A stretch of 64,000 nt of DNA from positions 248,001-312,000 of the forward strand of contig JAMWBK010000011.1 of assembly GCA_029953675.1 (NCBI GenBank), read 5' to 3'. Under the pieces are notes generated by a model. The model was not told where the DNA came from. It did not search any database and was given only the letters and a program-made list of their open reading frames with translations. Below, piece after piece: positions 5,261 to 17,870 of the stretch (position 1 is its first letter; every line of letters begins with the position of its first letter). The stretch is from Rhodosorus marinus CCMP1338. Taxonomy: Eukaryota; Plantae; Rhodophyta. The position numbers and the translations under genes are program-made.

Positions 5261-6718
5261 CTACGCCTTTTCTACTTCGAGGTTTGAACTAAGTTTTTCC
5301 CATGCGCTGGATCCGAGCAGGATCTCGTTAAACCGGTTGATATGAGCGCGAAGCTGTCGCGCAGATCCGAACGACATATCACGTGGAACGCCGATTCTGT
5401 CGCGCATGTATGCCAAACTGGTCGCGACCTCTGTCCTCTTCGATGCCTCGATTGGGGAGGTATCGAGATCCTGGTCCCCGCTGATGAGCAGTAAGATTAA
5501 GAGCCGGAGCGCGTGCTCAACTTCAGCTATGTGATTTCCTGGTGTGGCATCTGGATCGGCCAGTGGTGCGGTCACTGTCCGTGGTCTCTTTCCAATGCCT
5601 CGGAGAGCGAACCGGGCGATTTTCTCCGCGTTCCTCGCGACAGATGCTGCGGCCTCGATTCGATACTCCAGCTCAGTAGTCTTCGCAGATCGATCCTCCT
5701 CGGGATAGTTTTCATCGAGCGCCGACACGGGAAGCGTCCAGCTACCGTCCAGTCCATCCACGAACCTTCTGAATTCCTCCGATCCTTCCTCGGAGAAGGC
5801 GTTGCCATATTGCGGTGGAATATCATGGACAGTTGAATAAAAATCAGCCTTGGTCACACGGAACGCCTCGATCTTGTCCTCGAACGCCGCCATCCATCGA
5901 TCAATCGCGGGATACTCCTCACGAATCCTGAACCCCTTCCAGTAGACGGCGGTTGCCGTATACCTCTCAAAGAAGGGGATCGCCATGAGGTCGACCAGAC
6001 AGGCTTCAGCACCGAGAAGAAACGGACCCGACCTATCTATCTTCTCAAGTGCCTGGCTCCAGGCATCCAGTCCTCTCCTGAACGCACGCTTGTTGGACTC
6101 TGAACCGAAAGGTCTGAACATCCACTGGCACCAGAGGCCGAAACAGTCTCTCTCAAGAGACATGAGGGCGCGGGTAAGATTAGGAGCATCTGGGCGAGAT
6201 TCTTCTTCAGGTAGAAGCGGCTTGAATTCTGGAAAGCTCGACTCTATCAGGAACATGATGTCCACAGATTCTGTGATGAACTTGCCGTTGAGCTCCACTG
6301 CTGGAAGAAGTCCGGACGGTACCTTCTCCAAATAATACTCTGGTTTTGGCCCGTAACAACGCATGTTTATCATTCTCATTCGATATGGAATCCTTTTATG
6401 CTCAAGCTGCAACGTCATCCGCTGGCAATACGGACACCAATACGCCGGATCGCGATAAAGCGTGACTCGTATGTCTTCCTCCTTTCTCCCAAACAAGCGC
6501 ACCGATCCGTCCTTCGTATTCGCTGGACGCAGAACGCCATTGGGGTTTTCTTCGCCCAGAAAAGCCCCCACATCCACGCCGTATTGGGCGCCAAAGTCTC
6601 GAACGCCTTCCCGCACAAGGTCCCAAGAAGCGTCCGGGTTCATCGCAGCGGATACCTTCCTACCGCCACGAGACGAATGCCAACGACCACCGCTGACACA
6701 GAATCCGACGCCTTTCAT
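5261..6718 (-). CDS. Cys-type glutathione S-transferase (LYRDPAYWCPYC), probable plastid presequence, intronless
   Basis: 485-aa ORF with thioredoxin-fold CPYC, VPSGLLPAVEL, ESVDIM, a GST-C domain and a C-terminal RDRIGVPRDM motif. Confidence 0.9.
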   Translation of the reverse strand: MKGVGFCVSGGRWHSSRGGRKVSAAMNPDASWDLVREGVRDFGAQYGVDVGAFLGEENPNGVLRPANTKDGSVRLFGRKEEDIRVTLYRDPAYWCPYCQRMTLQLEHKRIPYRMRMINMRCYGPKPEYYLEKVPSGLLPAVELNGKFITESVDIMFLIESSFPEFKPLLPEEESRPDAPNLTRALMSLERDCFGLWCQWMFRPFGSESNKRAFRRGLDAWSQALEKIDRSGPFLLGAEACLVDLMAIPFFERYTATAVYWKGFRIREEYPAIDRWMAAFEDKIEAFRVTKADFYSTVHDIPPQYGNAFSEEGSEEFRRFVDGLDGSWTLPVSALDENYPEEDRSAKTTELEYRIEAAASVARNAEKIARFALRGIGKRPRTVTAPLADPDATPGNHIAEVEHALRLLILLLISGDQDLDTSPIEASKRTEVATSLAYMRDRIGVPRDMSFGSARQLRAHINRFNEILLGSSAWEKLSSNLEVEKA

Positions 6719-7631: not shown

Positions 7632-9083
7632 ATGGGATTCATCTGGAACCTAACTCGTCTGAACGGACGGATTGATCGACGTGGAGTCAGGCTCGTATCG
7701 TCCGTTTCCATGAGCTGGGACGTTGCCCGTACTCGTCTGGAACACTTGGCAGACAAGCAGGGCATCGATGCTGCGAAGCTGTTTGTGACGTCGCAGGTGG
7801 AAGGTGATCTGAGACCGCCTGTGGTCAGAGATGACGCCGTTCGAACTTTCGGTAAAGCTGAGGAGGATATCCGGGTCACACTGTACAGGGATCCAGCGTA
7901 CTGGTGTCCATACTGTCAACGCGTTCAGCTTCAGCTCGAGCTGAAGCGGATACCGTATCGCGTGAAGACGGTGAACATGCGATGTTACGGAGAGAAGCCG
8001 GAATACTTTCGGGCGCTTGTACCGTCCGGAGCGATCCCTGCGGTTAGCTTCGACGACGGACCCGTGAAGACCGAGTCGCTTGACTTGATGCTGGAGATCG
8101 AGCGGATGTTCCCAGACAGCTCACCCCTGATTCCGTCGGAGGACAACGAGGAGCTGTACAAAATCTTCCGGAGTTTCATGCAGCTCGAGCGTCGACTCTT
8201 CTCCAGCTGGTTCCAGTACATGTTCAGTGGCGGTTTCGGCCTGTTCGGTGGGGGTAAGGACAACTTTCTCTCAAACCTCGAAGCTTGGGACGCAGCGATG
8301 GGACAGGTCAGCAGCGGACCATTCGCCCTCGGAGGCAGTGTCTGTCTCGTCGACATTCTCGCGGTGCCTTTCGTCGAGAGGATGGTCGCATCGGCGCTGT
8401 ACTGGAAAGGGATCAACATTCGCGAGGACTATCCTGGCATCGACGCCTGGCTCAGAGGGATGGAAACCGAGTTCCCGGCGTACAAGGCGATAAGAGCAGA
8501 TATCTACTCCACTGTGCACAATCTTCCTCCGCAGACGGGGAGGGCGACTTTCGATTCTGGCTCAGACAAGTTTCGTGAGGTTATAGACGGAGTAGGCAGC
8601 AACTGGGAGCTGCCGTTGGTGGGGTCTGCGAGCTATGATCGAATCTATGGCGATGACTCTGAGGCGAAAATCGAGGCCGCGGCCGCGCTCATTCGTGGAT
8701 CGGAGTTCCTGGTGCCGTTTGCGATGCGTTCAGTTGGCGTTCGCAAACGAACCGTCTCCGCTCCGTTGGCAGATCCAGACGCGCAGCCCGTACTGTGGGG
8801 AAAGGAATTTGTGGAACGGGCTCTCTACGGAGTTGCTTTTGCTTTGATCGACGGAACCGAAGCACCGGAGGCGATAGACGCCGCCCAGAGCATTCCTGCA
8901 GATGAGCAGCGCAAAGTAATCGCCTCGCTTGCGTACCTTCGCGATCGAATTGGTGTTCCTCGAGACATGTCACCGGGCGCGGCGAGGCAGCTTCGCTCTC
9001 ACCTCAACTGGTTTTGCAGGAGCATGCTGGGGGAAGAGAGGTGGGCTGAGATCAAGCCCGAGTACGCTGTACTGAGTGCGTGA
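7632..9083 (+). CDS. Cys-type glutathione S-transferase, paralogue of 5261-6718, intronless
   Basis: Same motifs: LYRDPAYWCPYCQR, VPSGAIPAV, ESLDLM, RDRIGVPRDM. First ATG at 7632. Confidence 0.9.
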   Translation: MGFIWNLTRLNGRIDRRGVRLVSSVSMSWDVARTRLEHLADKQGIDAAKLFVTSQVEGDLRPPVVRDDAVRTFGKAEEDIRVTLYRDPAYWCPYCQRVQLQLELKRIPYRVKTVNMRCYGEKPEYFRALVPSGAIPAVSFDDGPVKTESLDLMLEIERMFPDSSPLIPSEDNEELYKIFRSFMQLERRLFSSWFQYMFSGGFGLFGGGKDNFLSNLEAWDAAMGQVSSGPFALGGSVCLVDILAVPFVERMVASALYWKGINIREDYPGIDAWLRGMETEFPAYKAIRADIYSTVHNLPPQTGRATFDSGSDKFREVIDGVGSNWELPLVGSASYDRIYGDDSEAKIEAAAALIRGSEFLVPFAMRSVGVRKRTVSAPLADPDAQPVLWGKEFVERALYGVAFALIDGTEAPEAIDAAQSIPADEQRKVIASLAYLRDRIGVPRDMSPGAARQLRSHLNWFCRSMLGEERWAEIKPEYAVLSA

Positions 9084-9324: not shown

Positions 9325-12300
9325 CTACTTTGTTTCATACCAGGAAGAACCTATGCCGACCGAAACCTTGAGATTCACGTCGCCGGGGAACTCAACGGCA
9401 TTTGCCATTTGGTCAACTACGATCTCCCTGACCGTATCCAATTCGTCAGGGTGTACTTCAAACACAAGCTCATCATGTACCTACGACGTCGCTTCCAAGT
9501 TAGATAGCTATCGCTGGATGGGAGGATGGGACCAGGAGCGGTAGCGCGTGCAACTCACCTGAAGCACCATTCTACTCTTCAAGTTGAACTCATCCAACTT
9601 TTCCGATATGTCGATCATCGCTTGCTTGATGAGGTCCGCCTGAGTCCCTTGGATTGGCATATTTACAGCTACACGTTCTGCAGCCTGGCGTTCGAACGAG
9701 TTGCCGCTAGCTAAGCACGCGAACGAAAAGGATCCGAAGTGAGAGACCTCGTCGACCATCGCCCAAAACGGCGGATCGCGGTCTTACTTATCCCACGAGC
9801 GCGCCTTCGACGGCCAAGAAACGTTCGACTGTATCCGCTCTCCCTTGCATGCTCTATCAGAGAATCCAGAAAGTACTTGATCTTCGGAAATCCGTCGTAA
9901 AAGTCATCGATCACCCTCCTAGCCTCTTCAATACCACTCTGGAGCTGATACGCTAAACCAGGCGCTGAGATTCCATAGGGGATCCCAAAGTTTACCTGCG
10001 CATGGGGCGAATGATGTGAGGCTATTCGGCTAAGCGAAAGGTCCCCAAACACTGTGCTAGGTTGTAGCACCTACCGCTTTGGCATGGTTTCGCAGCTGAG
10101 GAGTGACCTCCGAAGTATCCTGCAGTCCGTAGATACGTATCGCAGTTGACGAATGTATGTCGTCGCTGCGAGAAAATGCTGCCTGCATATGCTCGTCGCC
10201 ACTCAGCGCAGCAAGGATTCTGAGCTCGATCTGCTCGTAGTCCGCGCCGAGAAGTACAAATCCATCTTCTGGCACGAATGCTTTCCGGATGTTTCGACCA
10301 ACGGCATCGCGTACCGGAATCGCCTGGTTCGATAGGAAGGATAAGTTGCTCCGAACGGTCAGCAACTGAGCATGATCCGCAATAAATCTGTAAAAATCTG
10401 TGCTGTTCGCTCATACCTGAAGGTTTGGTCGCGAAAATGACAAACGTCCTGTCACCGCAGCAGTCTGACTGATAAGAGCATGAATGCGAGAATCTTTCTC
10501 CGAAACGCACTTGGCAAGTCCAACCAGGTAAGTGTTCTGGAGCTTTGAAATCGACCGGTGCCGAAGTACCAGCGTTGCCATTTGTCGTACCCGCTCGTCA
10601 GGTTCAGTCTGGAGAAGACCCATGAGAACCTTTTCGGATGTGGACACATTCCTCGTCCGCCTCTTGGTTGGAAGTTTCGCCCCCATCTCGATTAGCACCT
10701 CTGCGAGCTGCTTCGAAGAAGCCAAGTTGAACGGCGCGACGCCTTCGATCGCGAAGATCTCCTTCTCGAGCCTCTCCTTCTGCGAAGCGATCTCCTCCTC
10801 AATGGACTCCAACTTCGTAACATCCACTCGAATCCCTGTGGATTCCATCCGTGCCAGAACTGGAACAAGCTGCATCTCCATCTCCTGGATCCCCGCCAGG
10901 CCGACCTTCTGAATCAGTTTCTCAGCTGCCTTTGCCGTTTCCACTGACAGCAGAGCGACAGTCACAGCATCCTCCTCGGCGTCGGACTGCAGCAGATCCT
11001 CAATATCCCTCGAAGTTGCGAACTGAACTTGTTGTACCCTACTCATGAACGCGTCCGGATCTAATAGGAACGCGACAATGTCCAAGTCTACAAACTGGCA
11101 CCGAGGTAGAATTTTTCGGCCCGTTTCAAACCAACCTGTTCGGGGGAGCTCACACAGTCAATTCGCGCAATCAAGGCTCATGTCCAAAGTCGACATATCA
11201 AAACGTGACCTCTCACCTCTGAGGAAGGGTTTTAACCCCCATCCGACTATCTTCACGTCGCGCCTGTAGAGGATCTCAGTGATTGCTTCCATCGCTGCTC
11301 GGAGGGAACGAACATGCGTCAGTATGGTCAGCACTTCGCTGTTAGTTGTGGCCTCCATTCACAGCTCCCCGCTCACCTGTTCCGTGATCAGGGATCTGGC
11401 ATCCGCGTCCGTCTGGCAGACACACGGATGCGTTCTCTTGTTGGCAGTAGATGCCAACAGTCGACTGCTCACTTAGGGCCTCTACAAAGGAGCTGAAACT
11501 GACAAGCTCTGCAACTCGGCTCGGATCCGCAGGGCTTTCCTCTTCTTCCGCGCCCACGCCAGTGTCGCCAATCTCCAGGAGGCCATCGTCCGCGAGTTGT
11601 CGGACCGGCTGGGGATTGATTCCCAATCCGCGGCACCACTCTTCCACATCGTGCCACACGACAGGGGGCCTCCTCGTAACCTGTTCGAAAAGCTCGTCGT
11701 CGATCTCAGACATGTATTCCTCCAGCGTCAGCACTTGCTTCATATTCTCCGCAATTTCTCGCCCTTCTCGAAGCCTACAAGAAGTTCTCTTCAGTTCCTC
11801 AGTTGGAAACAAAGAAGGCGTCCCAGACCCGAAAAACTCACGTCGTGGATAGCCTTTCCGACTTAACATTTTCAGCATTCTCTAGTATGGACTCCAAGCT
11901 GCCGTATTCCTTCATGAGCTTCAAAACGCCCTTTTCGCCGAATCCTCTGAGCCCCGGTAGACTGTCCGACTTGTCCCCAATCAGCGACCTCATGTCCACG
12001 TGCTGTGAGGGCGGGATTCCCTCGTACTTGTCCTTGAACGTATCCTCGGTGACGGCCTCCCAAGAATCCAAAGGTCCTCTACCAAAGCCCATCACTGGCT
12101 TCAAGATCTGCACGTCGCAACCAAGAAGCTGGTAAAAGTCATGGTCGGTTGAGATAATCGCCGACTTGAACCCTTTGTCCGACGCTTTTCTAGTCATGGA
12201 TGCGATAACGTCATCTGCTTCATAGCCAGGGACCTAACCGCGCAGAGCGTACACACAGTTGCGCCGAGCACTCATCAATATCATGTACTGCTTCTCTAAG

Positions 12301-13038
12301 TCTTCTTCGGTGCAGACGAAGTGCTGGAGTTCTTACCTCCAGGTGAGAGATCCCAATAACATCAGCGAAGGACTTGACAAAGTCAACGGCTCGAACCACC
12401 TCCTCCGGTACAGAATCTCTGGACAACGATTGACGAAGACAGTTTAGCTGCTTCAGCGAGCGGAACAAAAAGCTTGCCGTAGCCGTTTACTTACCTTCCC
12501 GTTTTGTACTCTGGAAAAAGAGCGCTCCGAAAGTCGACACCCTTGACAAGATGTCTCCCATCGAATACAATCACAACGGGCAGATCCCTTCCGGCATAGT
12601 CTCCGATCAGCCTCAGGATACGCCTGAAGAAGACAAACACGGTACCAAACGGAAGCTCCTTCCCTGCGCTGGACAGATTGGTCTTGGACGACGAATAGTA
12701 CGCTCTGAAGATCAAGTTCATCGCGTCCACCAAGTATATTTCCTTCCTATTGTCCGCTCCCTCCCGGCGTCGTTCTCTCGACAGAGCTACACGGACCGAT
12801 CAGAGAGTTTGGAGAAGTCCAAACAAAACGAAAAGAGCTTAAGAATCTCAACGGAATTCTGAAGGATGCGTCTGGGATGATGAACTCGTACTCTCGTTCG
12901 AAGCCGATCGCATCTCAGCAAACGCCGCTACGAGCTGTTTATCCGTAAGACCCGAAAGCTGATTCTCAAGCTTTACGGTTTCGGAAACCACCTGATCCGA
13001 AAGCACGTCTCCAACGTCCACATTTTGACCTTTACCTT
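9325..13038 (-). CDS. polA: Family A DNA polymerase I-type enzyme (5'-3' nuclease, degenerate 3'-5' exonuclease, intact polymerase), multi-exon; 5' end probably lies further upstream
   Basis: 5'-nuclease motifs LVDAMNLIFRAYY, VVIVFDG, PGYEADDVIAS, STDHDFYQLL and GDKSDSLPGLRGFGEK. Polymerase motifs TGRLSFSRPNLQ, motif A GADYEQIELR, motif B RNHAKAV|NFGIPYG, ERQAAERVAVNMPIQGTQAD and motif C LQ|VHDELVFE (intron 9481-9558). Stop at 9325. In-frame exons continue to an acceptor near 13039 with no obvious start codon. Confidence 0.92.
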
Positions 13039-13427
13039 CTCGAATCTCAATCTCTTCCTACAAGCCCAAGCAGAAAGGAGATCAGGAACGAACGAGATGT
13101 CAGCTCATGATCAGCGCCAGTAACTCAAAAACGATAAAACGCAGATCCTCTGACACCGCTCTACAGCACGAAGCAACTCGTTGATACGGAGCGCATAGTC
13201 GCTAGCGTCAAGGGGAGATGCCATGACCACTCAGAGAACCGAAACTGAACTATCGGTCTTTTCTTCTTTTTTTTCGCTGTGAATCCAGTAACCAGTCCAC
13301 GCGTTTCGACCACAGCATCAACTTCTTCTTCGCGATGGGGCTTCGCTTTGACGGACACGAGAAGCCAATCGAACATGTTGTCTTTCGTTCATCCAAATGT
13401 CGATACGGACGACATGGTCAGCGAGTA

Positions 13428-13960
13428 TCAGAGGAAGAGCCACGGCAACTCAGAGTACTCAAACTGAGTACTAAGTGAAGCTTCCCCTTGGAACGACTGC
13501 TTTATTTGCAAGACCAGTCCACGCTTTTCGTGTTCGAATTCCTGGCTTGAATGGTCAACGAGGTTTCCGTTTGAACTCAACAGGGACAGCCCGTCCCCTT
13601 TATGTCCAACTTTTCTGCTGGGTTCGCCAAAGAGTATTCGCATTGAAAACGACAAGACCGGTCCCACGATGTTCGTGCTCAACTCCTTGGCTTGAGTAGT
13701 CAGCGAGGTTTCGCCTTGAACGTGCTCTCAATGCGACCAGCTCATTCATTTGCTGTTCTACTTCCTGGCTTGAGTGATCGATGAGGCTCCGACTTGAACC
13801 CAGCAAAAGGCAAGCTCACGATCTTCGTGCTCCACTTCTTGGCTTGACTAGTCTGCCAGGTATTGCGGGGAATCCAGTTTTTCTCAAAAATACCAATCCA
13901 CCCGCTCTGCGTTCAACTCAGTGGCGTGTGGCTCCGCTTCCGGTTCGAATTCTTGGCTTG
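13428..13960 (-). repeat. Degenerate coding-type tandem repeat, consensus L(A/I/V)D(H/Y)SSQE(F/V)EHE.R.LV, about 5 copies
   Basis: Repeated TCAAGCCA(A/G)G(A)A core on the minus strand, visible in ORFs 13600-13806 and 13428-13682 and upstream (ETSQEFEPE; LAD*SSQEVEHE). Confidence 0.7.
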
Positions 13961-14043
13961 TCTCGTTCCCAGTGGTCTGGTGCCGCATTCGTGCCTGAGT
14001 TTTTACGGGACGAAAGCCCCGCTTGCGTACTGAACGACAGCTT

Positions 14044-14857
14044 CTAGTTGTGCGGTTCTGTGCCTAGAAGAGTGTACAGTTTGGGTTGATTCACACGTAC
14101 CGATCGCCTAACTAGGGTCTCGCTGGATTCGGCTATTGCAACGTTGAGCTTTGCTGGTTTCTTCTGGACAGATTTGAGGACGTCTTCGAGCAGCTGATTC
14201 ACGTCGGCGAAGTTTTGCATCTTCCTTGAAGCGCTCTTTGGTCCGAACCCCTTCAGCTCGCTCAGCGCAATGACGGACGGGACTTGCCCTGGTTCAACTC
14301 CGGGAAAGAGGCTGTTGAGGTGGATCTTCGTCAGCTCCTCTCGTTCGAATGAATGTGAGGGCGACTCATAGTTGAGCTTGAGTTGAAAGAGCTTCTTCCC
14401 ATCCGCTCCGAGGAGCTGATAGACCCCTGGGTTTGTGGAATAAACCTGGACAACGGAGCAGAAAGTCGCCGAAGCGATCAACTAGCGCTCACCTTAGTCG
14501 GACTATCGATGGGTTTGGACGGTTTACCTCGAGATCCTCATCGATCGCTGCTGAGCAGACCTTGAACAGTCCCACTCCATTCTGAAGATTCCATCCAGCC
14601 GAGGCAATCTCGCCTTCGGCAACGTCGCCTTTACCATTAACCAAAACCACCCGTCGCTTCCCCACGCACGTCCTCGCAACGAACAACAACGCCGAGATCA
14701 GAGACAGACGACCCTCGGAGAACGGCGGACAGCTCAAATCCACCACAGTCGTCGGAAAACCACCCGCCTGAGCCCTGACGATACATAAATTCCGCCATCC
14801 GCCCTGCCGACCACTCCGACGGTGAGGATAGAGACGAACTGATGAAAGGAATCCCAT
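14044..14857 (-). CDS. Plastid-presequence-bearing degenerate Pol I 5'-3' nuclease module; separate gene or N-terminal part of the Pol I gene
   Basis: MGFLSSVRL... presequence. TVVDLS and VVLVNGKG align with YLVDAM and VVIVFDGRH. VYSTNPGVYQLLGAD aligns with IISTDHDFYQLLGCD. ALSELKGFGPKSASRKMQNFADVNQLLED aligns with the H3TH of the neighbouring Pol I. Splice sites are tentative. Confidence 0.6.
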
Positions 14858-15908: not shown

Positions 15909-17870
15909 TCAGTCGTCTCGATCGGAGATCCCAACCACGACCAACTGTTTTCCGCTTTGCTGATCGTCGACTTCGGATATCTCCTGTCCGCTCTGGTCCC
16001 TTCTTCGTGAGCGGAGAGCGTGAATCCACTTGCTTACGTTCCTCGCAGAAAGCGCTGTGAAGACTATACCACAAGAAAACCACTGCCAGGAGCTCAGCTT
16101 CGTACCAATGACGAAGGAGGATACCATGACGCTTGAAACTTGCTGAACCTGCGGCAAGTGACGATACGGAGAGAAGCATAATGTTAGATGTGTGAGCGCG
16201 GAGAGACGAGAACTAACTCCAACCACAAGCCAAGTTCACTACGTCCGCAACTACAGCAGATGGTCTCACGTCTGCTGAGTTCACCAGCCTGACGAGACGT
16301 GTTCGAGCAGAACAGTGCCGGTCTTCTTGCGCACAGACGCAGCCTCATCGCTCCGCAGGAGCTTTTGTACATCTCGACGCTCACAGCAGACTTTTCGAAA
16401 GTTGTCAGGGCTTCGTAAGACAGCCGTGACAAACCGAAAGCGTTGATCTAGCGCTGATCATAACATTCTGTGTGCCTTTCACAAGCCTAGTGACCGAGCA
16501 CTAGCTTCCGCTCACGCTATCATCAGATACGAACCACATCGCTCAAGACTGCCTCGTCCGCCAGAGCTTCCAAAGACCTTCGTGACAGACTGAATCGTCG
16601 CTCGGGCGCTAATCGTCCCAGTCTGAGCGTTATCCGTAGGTGCGCGGCCTGAGCAATAGCTTCCGCTCATTGCTATCATCAGATCCGACCTCAGCCTCGT
16701 CGACACTTATCAGAGTTCCAAGAGACGGCAATGACAGGCGCGATGATCGTAGCAGACTGAGCGCTAGCGGGAACTACAGCTTCCCGCAAAACCCAGGTTG
16801 GAGTGTCATCGTCCTTCGAACGTGTCGTTCCGAAGTGGATGACCTTCTACTTGTATGAATCGTCCGGTGCGGTGTTCGAAAACGGTATCATCTGTTTGTT
16901 TGAGGAGGATAACTTACTGTGATGACCGTCCCGAAGAAGACTGCACCAAACTCCTTAATCGTCGAAGTAATGAAGAATTGTGCGGATACGGCCCCCAGGG
17001 TGAGGAGGCAGAGCTCCCTTGCGAACTGCCCACTGGAGCTGAGAAGCGACAGTGAGGATCGGAGTGCTCCTCCGGGGATGCAGCTGAGCAAAGACAGGAG
17101 CCCAGAGAACAGGTTCACGTACAGCATCTGGCTGTTCGACGAGAGTTTGTATCCGAGGAAAAGTCGCTCCTGGTACGCCATGAGGAGAGAATCGAAGAAA
17201 ATGTTTCCAAACATCAGCAGCAATCCAATCCAGCTGTTGCCTTCGGTAGCTACTCTGGATGAGATGTTCCCGTTCATGAAAGATGCAGTACCGAGTCCAA
17301 CTAGAACCTTGAGAAGCAGCGCGAAAAGTAGCACAAAAACTCTCAGTTCAACGTAGAGTAAACTCTCGACAGAGATTTGTATTGAAATGTTTCTGAGGCA
17401 GTTGGGAGGCCGCTGTTCTCCTCATTTCTTACCGCCGAAGAATAGTCGATGGTTGTATACGTCCTCTTGGAGAGCAGAGCGGACAGCACCATGACGGGAA
17501 TCAGTTTTGCGCACTTCAGGAGCGCTTGAGTAGGCAGTGAGATCCATTTAAGTGCTTCATATTGACAGGTCGTGGCCAGGAGGTTGGCGACAGAGACGAG
17601 AGGAAAACGATCTATCGGCGCTTGAGGAGCGAGCGCGCGTACGCCGCCGAACGCCACCAACACAACAGCGGCCGCCGCTGCCGCTGAGAGACGATTAGAC
17701 AGTACCAAAAAGCCTGTTTCTGTGAACAACCTCTCCTCGCCCTTCACGACAAACGGCCGGGTCATGATCCGCTCTTGGCAATACGAGTACGTCACCAAAG
17801 ACGCCACGATTCCAATCGCGTACACTACACCCTTCCATGGACTGGCGGCGCCTACTGGAACTGATCCCAT
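15909..17870 (-). CDS. UAA-family nucleotide-sugar/PAPS transporter (SLC35B-like), 3 exons
   Basis: QERIMTRPF, FLVLSNRL, CQYEALKWISLPTQALLKCAKLIPVM, FFDSLLMAYQERLF, QMLYVNLFS. The last exon joins as VIT|VQQVSSVMVSSFVIGTKLSSWQWFSCGIVF across intron 16149-16917. Confidence 0.85.
16480..16760 (-). ncRNA. Candidate intronic structured RNA pair (two ~155-nt related units)
   Basis: Direct repeat ATCTGATGATAGC..TGAGCGGAAGCTA.TGCTC at ~16495-16530 and ~16650-16686, each folding into a GGAA-capped stem, inside the 769-bp intron. Confidence 0.35.

Follow-up and report, generated by a model that had tools for sequence, protein, structure and literature searches.

A degenerate 5'-nuclease module precedes the intact nuclease of a likely organellar DNA polymerase I in the red alga Rhodosorus marinus

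The stretch analysed here, 64,000 nucleotides of the NCBI contig JAMWBK010000011.1 (GCA_029953675.1) from Rhodosorus marinus CCMP1338 (the window, whose positions are used throughout), carries a single gene on the minus strand at 9325-14857 with a product of 1188 aa. The R. marinus nuclear genome comes from a study of the minicircular mitochondrial genomes of the Stylonematophyceae (PMC10250338) and its genes were annotated by BRAKER 2.1.5 (BRAKER2) after training on mapped RNA-seq data (PMC10250338). The product was deposited as KAJ8901217.1, "hypothetical protein NDN08_007066" (1188 aa), and the domains listed for it in the NCBI record are 5_3_exonuc_N, 5_3_exonuc and DNA_pol_A. An independent splice reconstruction, based on homology and GT-AG sites and aided by two related transcript-like contigs with about 80% nucleotide identity (L001 and L002), gave 13 exons and 1188 codons and was identical to KAJ8901217.1. 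The gene model is already deposited, and what is unannotated in KAJ8901217.1 is a cryptic second nuclease-like domain. One nuclear gene of 13 exons, running from 14857 to 9325 on the minus strand, probably encodes an organellar DNA polymerase I (Pol I) of 1188 aa with a dead nuclease module. The protein would contain, in this order, a presequence (1-33), the dead nuclease (34-225), a linker (226-295), an intact nuclease (297-556), a spacer (557-801) and the polymerase (802-1186). A sequence-only reading of the window had proposed a single gene at 14857-9325; this span equals KAJ8901217.1, and it is backed by the open reading frame (ORF) of protein P0044, by an intron position in contig L005 and by coding constraint on exon 3.

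P0044 is the protein encoded on L004, a 4218-nt transcript-like contig of a more distant relative, and L005 is a genomic-like contig of a third lineage, which encodes protein P0163. MMETSP0011 is R. marinus CCMP769, and its Transcript_35240 carries P0165 and P0043. Over 15095-12756, the transcripts labelled as R. marinus or clustering as such (L001, L002 and P0043; MMETSP0011 and others) differed from the genome strain by a synonymous divergence (dS) of 0.25-0.31, with about 80% nucleotide identity. This divergence suggests species-level differences under a single name. Scans of metagenome contigs with protein patterns and with a degenerate DNA pattern of exon 3 gave no match, in a collection without related transcript contigs.

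The 5'-nucleases of the Pol I type belong to textbook knowledge, with a domain order that is considered fixed. As judged from alignments, residues 34-225 of the Rhodosorus protein are a degenerate 5'-nuclease module resembling flap endonucleases (FENs), with homology established for the C-terminal ~100 residues. All of the coding motifs quoted in the sequence-only reading were located on the minus strand, namely MGFLSS at 14857, TTVVDLS at 14752-14732, VVLVNGKG at 14650-14627, STNPG at 14439-14425, YQLLGAD at 14421-14401 and LKGFGPKSASRKM at 14256-14218. The quoted motif LIAS did not belong to the module, as 14481-14470 falls in intron 1, which is spliced out in L001 and L002. The ORF at 14481-14044 matched the paralogous Pol I nuclease exon by BLASTP with an E value of 4e-7 and 28% identity over 97 aa; in this alignment STNPG paired with STDHD, and a gap faced GDKSD. 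When a profile of five module sequences was compared with 31 real 5'-nucleases by hhalign, the probability was 97.3% and the E value 2e-11 over aa 97-199 (14569-14179). The matched part comprised the last core strands and the helix-three-turn-helix (H3TH); the elements covered, besides the H3TH itself, were the strand of S-x-D-x-D, the QLL helix and the helix that follows the EADD position. The real score was 77.1, compared with 21.8 for the best of 40 column-shuffled profiles and 18.3 for the reversed profile. The profile similarity to 5'-3' exonucleases on which the earlier domain call depended was therefore found. Independent MAFFT alignment and hhalign at low mact placed the whole domain colinear with its motifs in register; in those alignments β1 is matched by TTVVDL and the VVFD strand (β2) by GKRRVVLVNG.

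A structure predicted by AlphaFold2 (AF2) from a mixed multiple sequence alignment (MSA), to which real nucleases had been added, had a pLDDT of 78.7, with the model steered by its MSA. The top Foldseek matches of this model were plastid exonuclease 1, T5 D15 and Rad2/XPG, with E values of 3e-6 to 7e-4 and TMq of 0.47-0.62. Since it is biased by its MSA, the model can serve as a compatibility check only.

Nine acidic positions, whose residues bind the two or three catalytic metals, are near-invariant in active bacterial and red-algal nucleases: D6, D61, E115, D117, D118, D140, D142, D197 and D200. The module keeps one of these nine ligands, the first catalytic Asp D6 (D40 in the protein). D61, E115, D117, D118, D140 and D142 were substituted, and D197 and D200 were deleted, in the module of the window; the modules of P0044 and L005 additionally retain D140, the first Asp of S-x-D-x-D. 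All module sequences have a deletion of about 50 alignment columns that removes the helical arch YK..R (Y79/K80/R83), which serves the threading of 5' flaps, and the GDxSDN loop of 8 residues was deleted in the module. This residue table agrees with the earlier observation that the acidic residues are gone, with STDHD changed to STNPG and GDKSD deleted. Because the acidic ligands are gone, and given the known active sites of FENs, we strongly infer that two-metal catalysis has been lost and that the module is unable to cut DNA. G207, G209 and K211 of the H3TH hairpin are retained as G-x-G-x-K in all five lineages, and the hairpin reads KGFGPKSA in the window, L001 and L002, KGFGLKRA in P0044 and RGIGLKRA in L005. 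In FENs, the H3TH glycine hairpin and the lysine touch the DNA backbone. The module could plausibly still bind the DNA backbone.

The remainder of the protein has the features of an intact Pol I. The active nuclease at aa 297-556 matched PF02739 (E 3e-35) and PF01367 (E 3e-22) and retains all of the acidic ligands in LVD, VFD, YEADD, STDHD and GDKSD. The polymerase domain matched PF00476 (E 6e-128) and contains DYEQIELR, RNHAKAVNFGIPYG and QVHDE; motifs A, B and C of family A were all found, with DYEQIELR, RNHAKAVNFG and QVHDE present. Between the two domains, aa 557-801 (11713-10816) gave no match to the 3'-5' exonuclease family PF01612 at E<=1. The missing 3'-5' exonuclease domain would fit the red-algal rather than the bacterial type of Pol I; bacterial Pol I has this domain, and in the Pol I of Cyanidioschyzon merolae it is inactive.

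The fusion of module, linker and full Pol I in one gene is likely, judging from exon 3 and from the order of the parts in the relatives. The sequence-only reading had noticed an open frame without a start codon upstream of Pol I, and this frame is exon 3 (13057-12892). Compared with L002, exon 3 showed zero indels, substitutions of 5/1/11 by codon position and a dN/dS (ratio of nonsynonymous to synonymous divergence) of 0.23, in this frame only. Exon 3 has no in-frame ATG before AEM in its last few codons, and its acceptor TAG is an in-frame stop. Because exon 3 starts right after this in-frame TAG acceptor and has no usable ATG, it must join an upstream coding exon. Exon 2 is the sole conserved coding sequence upstream of it, and the phase-0 donor of exon 2 matches the phase-0 acceptor of exon 3. 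P0044 is a single ORF that contains the presequence, module, linker and active nuclease, with in-frame stops preceding its ATG. In P0044 the module profile matched with an E value of 8.8e-20 (hmmsearch), the active nuclease was found by Pfam at residues 340-602, and the protein aligned across the RRS|EEIEI junction with zero insertion. L005 has the order module exon 1, module exon 2, a 384-nt intron (GTAAGC...CAG), linker exon and active nuclease; the 384-nt intron lies directly after LLKRS, at the same codon and in the same phase (0) as intron 2. The fused order is conserved across three divergent lineages. The motif of exon 3 (GDVL...LENQLSGLT) is kept in P0044 and L005. A repeat linker, as proposed from the sequence alone, was not borne out, as the repeats at 13512-13966 are intronic and non-coding; the real linker consists of the 55-residue exon 3 and the first 15 residues of exon 4 (aa 226-295).

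Intron 2 diverged from L002 by a K of 0.29, about equal to the dS of 0.25-0.31, with 55 gap columns, and evolves neutrally. It shares no sequence with the equivalent intron of L005. The repeat families D1-D3 within intron 2 have 62-88% identity, spacings of 74-145 nt and a shared core like TTCGTGYTCNAMTTCYTGGCTTGA. The repeats match only themselves within the 64-kb window; in L002 they can be aligned in part, and the 384-nt intron of L005 lacks them. Scans of 12.5-15.3 kb for tRNA, Rfam and TRF matches gave zero matches. We dropped the idea that the repeats are snoRNAs or tRNA-like elements, since the intron evolves at the synonymous rate and has nothing in common with the L005 intron. The repeats look like neutral local duplications that enlarged intron 2.

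Several results weigh against reading this gene as a fused Pol I with a degenerate nuclease module. On the side of the module, its first ~63 residues alone (TTVVDL...VVLVNG) gave an E value of 0.24 against nucleases, which is not significant, and this part, where an N-terminal PIN-like (resolvase-like) α/β core would be expected, is colinear only; the alignment to the Pol I 5'-nuclease proposed in the sequence-only reading thus held for the C-terminal ~100 residues (by BLASTP, hhalign and shuffles) and not for the first ~63. Pfam analysis of the exon alone gave 13.5 bits and an E value of 0.1 for PF01367 (H3TH/SAM-fold), for which the cutoff is 40, and the spliced module and residues 1-283 of P0044 gave zero matches to PF02739 or PF01367. 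An hmmsearch of the PDB with the module profile gave nothing significant (Xni, E 1.9), and AF2 on an MSA of three orthologues only gave an unusable pLDDT of 37. With the low Pfam score, the empty PDB search, the non-significant N-terminal third and this low pLDDT, the module might be taken for an N-terminal extension unrelated to nucleases, with a chance helix-hairpin-helix-like hairpin and a YQLLG-like stretch. We regard such a chance resemblance as highly improbable in view of the hhalign E value of 2e-11 (best shuffle score 21.8), the BLASTP match to the adjacent paralogue (E 4e-7) and the independent MAFFT alignment, which is colinear over the whole domain with its motifs in register.

On the side of the fusion, intron 2 was kept unspliced in L001 and L002, which both span its donor, and in Transcript_35240; in L002 the colinear, unspliced sequence continues to 12756, immediately ahead of the first Pol I nuclease exon. 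Transcript_35240 of MMETSP0011 has the module and Pol I as two separate ORFs, P0165 (module and read-through tail, 290 aa) and P0043 (Pol I from MRSSSNE, 915 aa, with the downstream introns spliced). A search with the full protein found no Rhodosorus transcript product of ~1190 aa. Intron 2 appears to be frequently retained in Rhodosorus polyA+ RNA and spliced inefficiently. A possible, rather unlikely arrangement is a dual output, in which the main polyA+ RNA keeps intron 2 and yields an organelle-targeted pseudo-nuclease of ~243 aa, a spliced minority yields the fused Pol I, and both are functional. It would account for the retention in L001 and L002, for a Transcript_35240 that has ten downstream introns spliced (P0043) and yet a separate module ORF (P0165), and for the missing fused Rhodosorus product in the protein search, and it would suit the length of intron 2, which is 1043 nt compared with ~67-105 nt for the other 11 introns. 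When intron 2 is retained, the ORF stops at TAG 14046-14044, 18 codons past RRS, and the read-through tails after RRS are 18, 31, 65 and 58 aa long and different in every species. Because these tails differ per species and evolve neutrally, there is no conserved stand-alone C-terminus, which argues against a dual output; furthermore, de novo assemblers often retain unspliced isoforms, the coding constraint on exon 3 requires splicing, and P0044 is a fused mRNA in a relative. A short isoform with the presequence and the module alone may be made alongside the fusion, and in this form, an intron-retaining isoform encoding the presequence and dead module only, the stand-alone inactive nuclease suggested earlier as the alternative may exist. 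As a separate gene, we consider it very unlikely. There would then be two genes, a stand-alone inactive nuclease at 14857-14044 and a Pol I with its own promoter or first exon in 14040-13058, and the deposited model would be a prediction artefact. The upstream ORF does have its own stop at 14044, and intron-retaining transcripts occur. A scan of intron 2 for conserved ATG-to-GT phase-0 mini-exons found three, of 3-9 codons, with weak donors and poorly conserved peptides. Among these, the conserved mini-ORF MRSVSTSCF at 13196-13170 (minus strand), of which the ATG, the open frame and the phase-0 GT (GTGCTG) at its end are kept in L002, is the one sequence that could conceivably serve as another first exon, for a transcript with Pol I alone, and it is a weak candidate. 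Its GTGCTG donor is unlike the 12 donors of the gene, it differs at 4 of its 9 residues, and it would supply no targeting peptide. Two genes are also disfavoured by the single ORF of P0044, which covers both parts, by an intron of L005 at the same position and in the same phase, by the unbroken RNAs of L002 and Transcript_35240 across the interval, and by the neutral evolution of the interval.

Among the three Rhodosorus-like lineages, the protein identity of the module was 82-91%. Its dN/dS was 0.17-0.36 overall and 0.07 in the N-terminal half (exon 1 remainder), which is the best-conserved yet least nuclease-like part of the module. These ratios indicate that the module is under purifying selection. 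When 1.84 billion proteins representing clusters were searched with the module profile, the matches were P0001, P0002, P0044, P0163 and one chance repeat protein. As these four proteins belong to close relatives, the module is restricted to this small clade, at detectable similarity. The H3TH sequence GFG was present in the module and in 3 of 3 red-algal active nucleases, and in 0 of 140 bacterial ones (G[VIL]G in 135). Since this rare GFG is common to the module and the red-algal active nucleases, a duplicated copy of the red-algal Pol I nuclease is the probable source of the module. When 160 nucleases were ranked by their score against the hidden Markov model (HMM) of the module, the red-algal ones were 2nd, 3rd and 11th and a bacterial one was 1st; this ranking appears indecisive on an intragenic duplication.

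The presequence contains 6 R/K and 0 D/E residues, with Phe at position 3, and MGF(L/V)SSVRL is kept in L001 and L002. It is probably an organelle transit peptide, because of this composition and the plastid localisation of the Pol I of Cyanidioschyzon merolae (PMC3914683). The C. merolae enzyme has a 5'-nuclease and a polymerase, is without 3'-5' exonuclease activity and was assigned to primer removal (PMC3914683). Like this CmPol I (CMT462C; Moriyama et al. 2008, 2014; PMC3914683), the Rhodosorus protein is nuclear-encoded and of bacterial type, combines a 5'-3' exonuclease with a family A polymerase and lacks a functional 3'-5' exonuclease domain; in the organelle, CmPol I presumably removes primers or performs nick translation (PMC3914683). 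CmPol I was described with two domains, whereas the Rhodosorus protein adds a degenerate nuclease of ~190 residues and a linker of ~70 residues.

The module has the same order of elements as the bacterial Pol I 5'-nuclease and FEN paralogues (ExoIX/Xni, FenA and T5 D15), namely β1 with the first Asp, the central strands, the S-x-D-x-D position, the QLL helix and the H3TH G-x-G-x-K. Unlike these FENs, it is without 8 of the 9 acidic ligands, the helical arch and the GDxSDN loop, and it falls below Pfam thresholds; and in contrast to stand-alone FENs, it sits in a tandem fusion, ahead of an intact copy. ExoIX offers a precedent for a FEN with one metal site lost (PMC3783174). The plant organellar 5'-3' exonucleases (Arabidopsis 5'-3' EXO1/2, or OEX1/2; plastid-localised exonuclease 1, PDB 9L55/9L56) are likewise organelle-targeted, derived from Pol I and FEN-like, and were the top Foldseek matches of the MSA-guided model. 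However, the plant enzymes are stand-alone and active and have lost the polymerase, whereas Rhodosorus keeps the polymerase and the active nuclease, and its extra copy is inactive. A reclassification of family A polymerases leaves tandem 5'-nucleases unmentioned and discusses inactive accessory domains as processivity modules (PMC10201439), which is the kind of role proposed here for the Rhodosorus module. No description of a tandem 5'-nuclease with a selectively maintained dead N-terminal copy was found in the literature searched.

Because the H3TH glycine hairpin and the lysine are kept, the module would most likely act as a non-catalytic domain for DNA binding or substrate positioning. Alternatively, it could be a protein-interaction domain for a nick-translating or primer-removing polymerase in the plastid. 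It is a doubtful, speculative idea that the pseudo-nuclease is a new functional Pol I accessory in Rhodosorus and its relatives, acting as a non-cutting sensor of flaps or nicks or, when freed by intron retention, as a competitor of active FENs for DNA ends. Because standard domain scans miss the module, it has escaped notice in a protein labelled "hypothetical". Through it, one can ask in a natural setting what the FEN scaffold does without catalysis, be it DNA binding, substrate hand-off or regulation. The red-algal class in question has minicircular mitochondrial genomes, and the module is a further candidate among its differences in organelle DNA maintenance. There is also a lesson for annotation: a 1-kb intron among introns of ~80 nt, retained in transcriptome assemblies, makes one gene resemble two. 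The practical reach is modest, with a module limited to a small clade and a function that is inferred only.

The features of the gene are listed in Table 1.

Table 1. Parts of the Pol I gene and of its introns, with window positions and the basis of each assignment
Feature	Positions	Strand	Basis
Start codon and presequence, aa 1-33, MGFLSSVRLYPHRRSGRQGGWRNLCIVRAQAGG	14759-14857	-	Composition; conservation in L001/L002
Exon 1 remainder, aa 34-110, N-half of the pseudo-nuclease (TTVVDLS ... GKRRVVLVNG ... DEDLE)	14528-14758	-	Alignment; dN/dS
Intron 1, 82 nt, GTAAAC...CCAG, contains LIAS	14446-14527	-	Spliced out in L001 and L002
Exon 2, aa 111-225, C-half of the pseudo-nuclease	14101-14445	-	BLASTP; hhalign; residue table
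Intron 2, 1043 nt, GTACGT...TTGTAG, phase 0	13058-14100	-	Removal reproduces KAJ8901217.1 exactly
5-6 degenerate direct repeats in intron 2, non-coding	13512-13966		Families D1-D3
Exon 3, start of the linker, aa 226-281, conserved motif GDVLSDQVVSETVKLENQLSGLTDKQ	12892-13057	-	Coding constraint; conservation in P0044/L005
Intron 3, 105 nt, phase 1	12787-12891	-	Spliced in P0043, retained in L002
Exons 4-7 (part, with introns), last 15 linker residues, then active 5'-3' exonuclease/FEN, aa 297-556	11714-12786	-	Pfam
Remainder of Pol I: spacer, aa 557-801; family A polymerase, aa 802-1186; stop codon	9325-11713	-	Pfam; motifs

According to the alignment with L002, the 5' untranslated region reaches at least to 15095 (at least 238 nt). 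The exon end DLEV| at intron 1 is common to the window and P0163/L005. Exon 2 contains STNPG in place of S-x-D-x-D, the YQLLG helix and the H3TH sequence LKGFGPKSA, and its acidic GDxSDN loop is missing. Its 3' end, CGATCG|GTACGT, is in phase 0, and this donor is kept in L001 and L002. The sequence of the MMETSP protein P0043, MRSSSNETLSRE (...SNETLSRE...), confirms the donor of exon 3, GAGA|GTACGA (12892/12891), and the removal of intron 3 is required for the deposited 1188 aa. An alternative donor of intron 3, TTCC|GTTGAG, was rejected, as it gives 1201 aa; the 1188 aa result from the P0043-confirmed donor GTACGA, which lies 39 nt upstream. The splice junctions in the region of exons 4-7 were confirmed by P0003 and P0043.

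A frame shift was seen in L004 at ~2700-2790, in the polymerase spacer after ...SLESERKR, and the sequence resumes as ...IEDELFGLDGVGRFN in a different frame. A short intron was probably retained here, and it splits the gene call into ORFs of 946 aa and 324 aa.

Directly downstream of the Pol I stop lies a pair of GST-like paralogues (GST_N_2/3, GST_C_2), one of 485 aa at 5261-6718 (minus strand) and one of 483 aa at 7632-9083 (plus strand), head to head and about 900 nt apart; the GST-like ORF at 7632-9083 is intron-less. Upstream of Pol I, on the same strand and about 1 kb from its start codon, a nucleotide-sugar transporter of the UAA family (PF08449, 355 aa) was found at 15909-17870 (minus strand).

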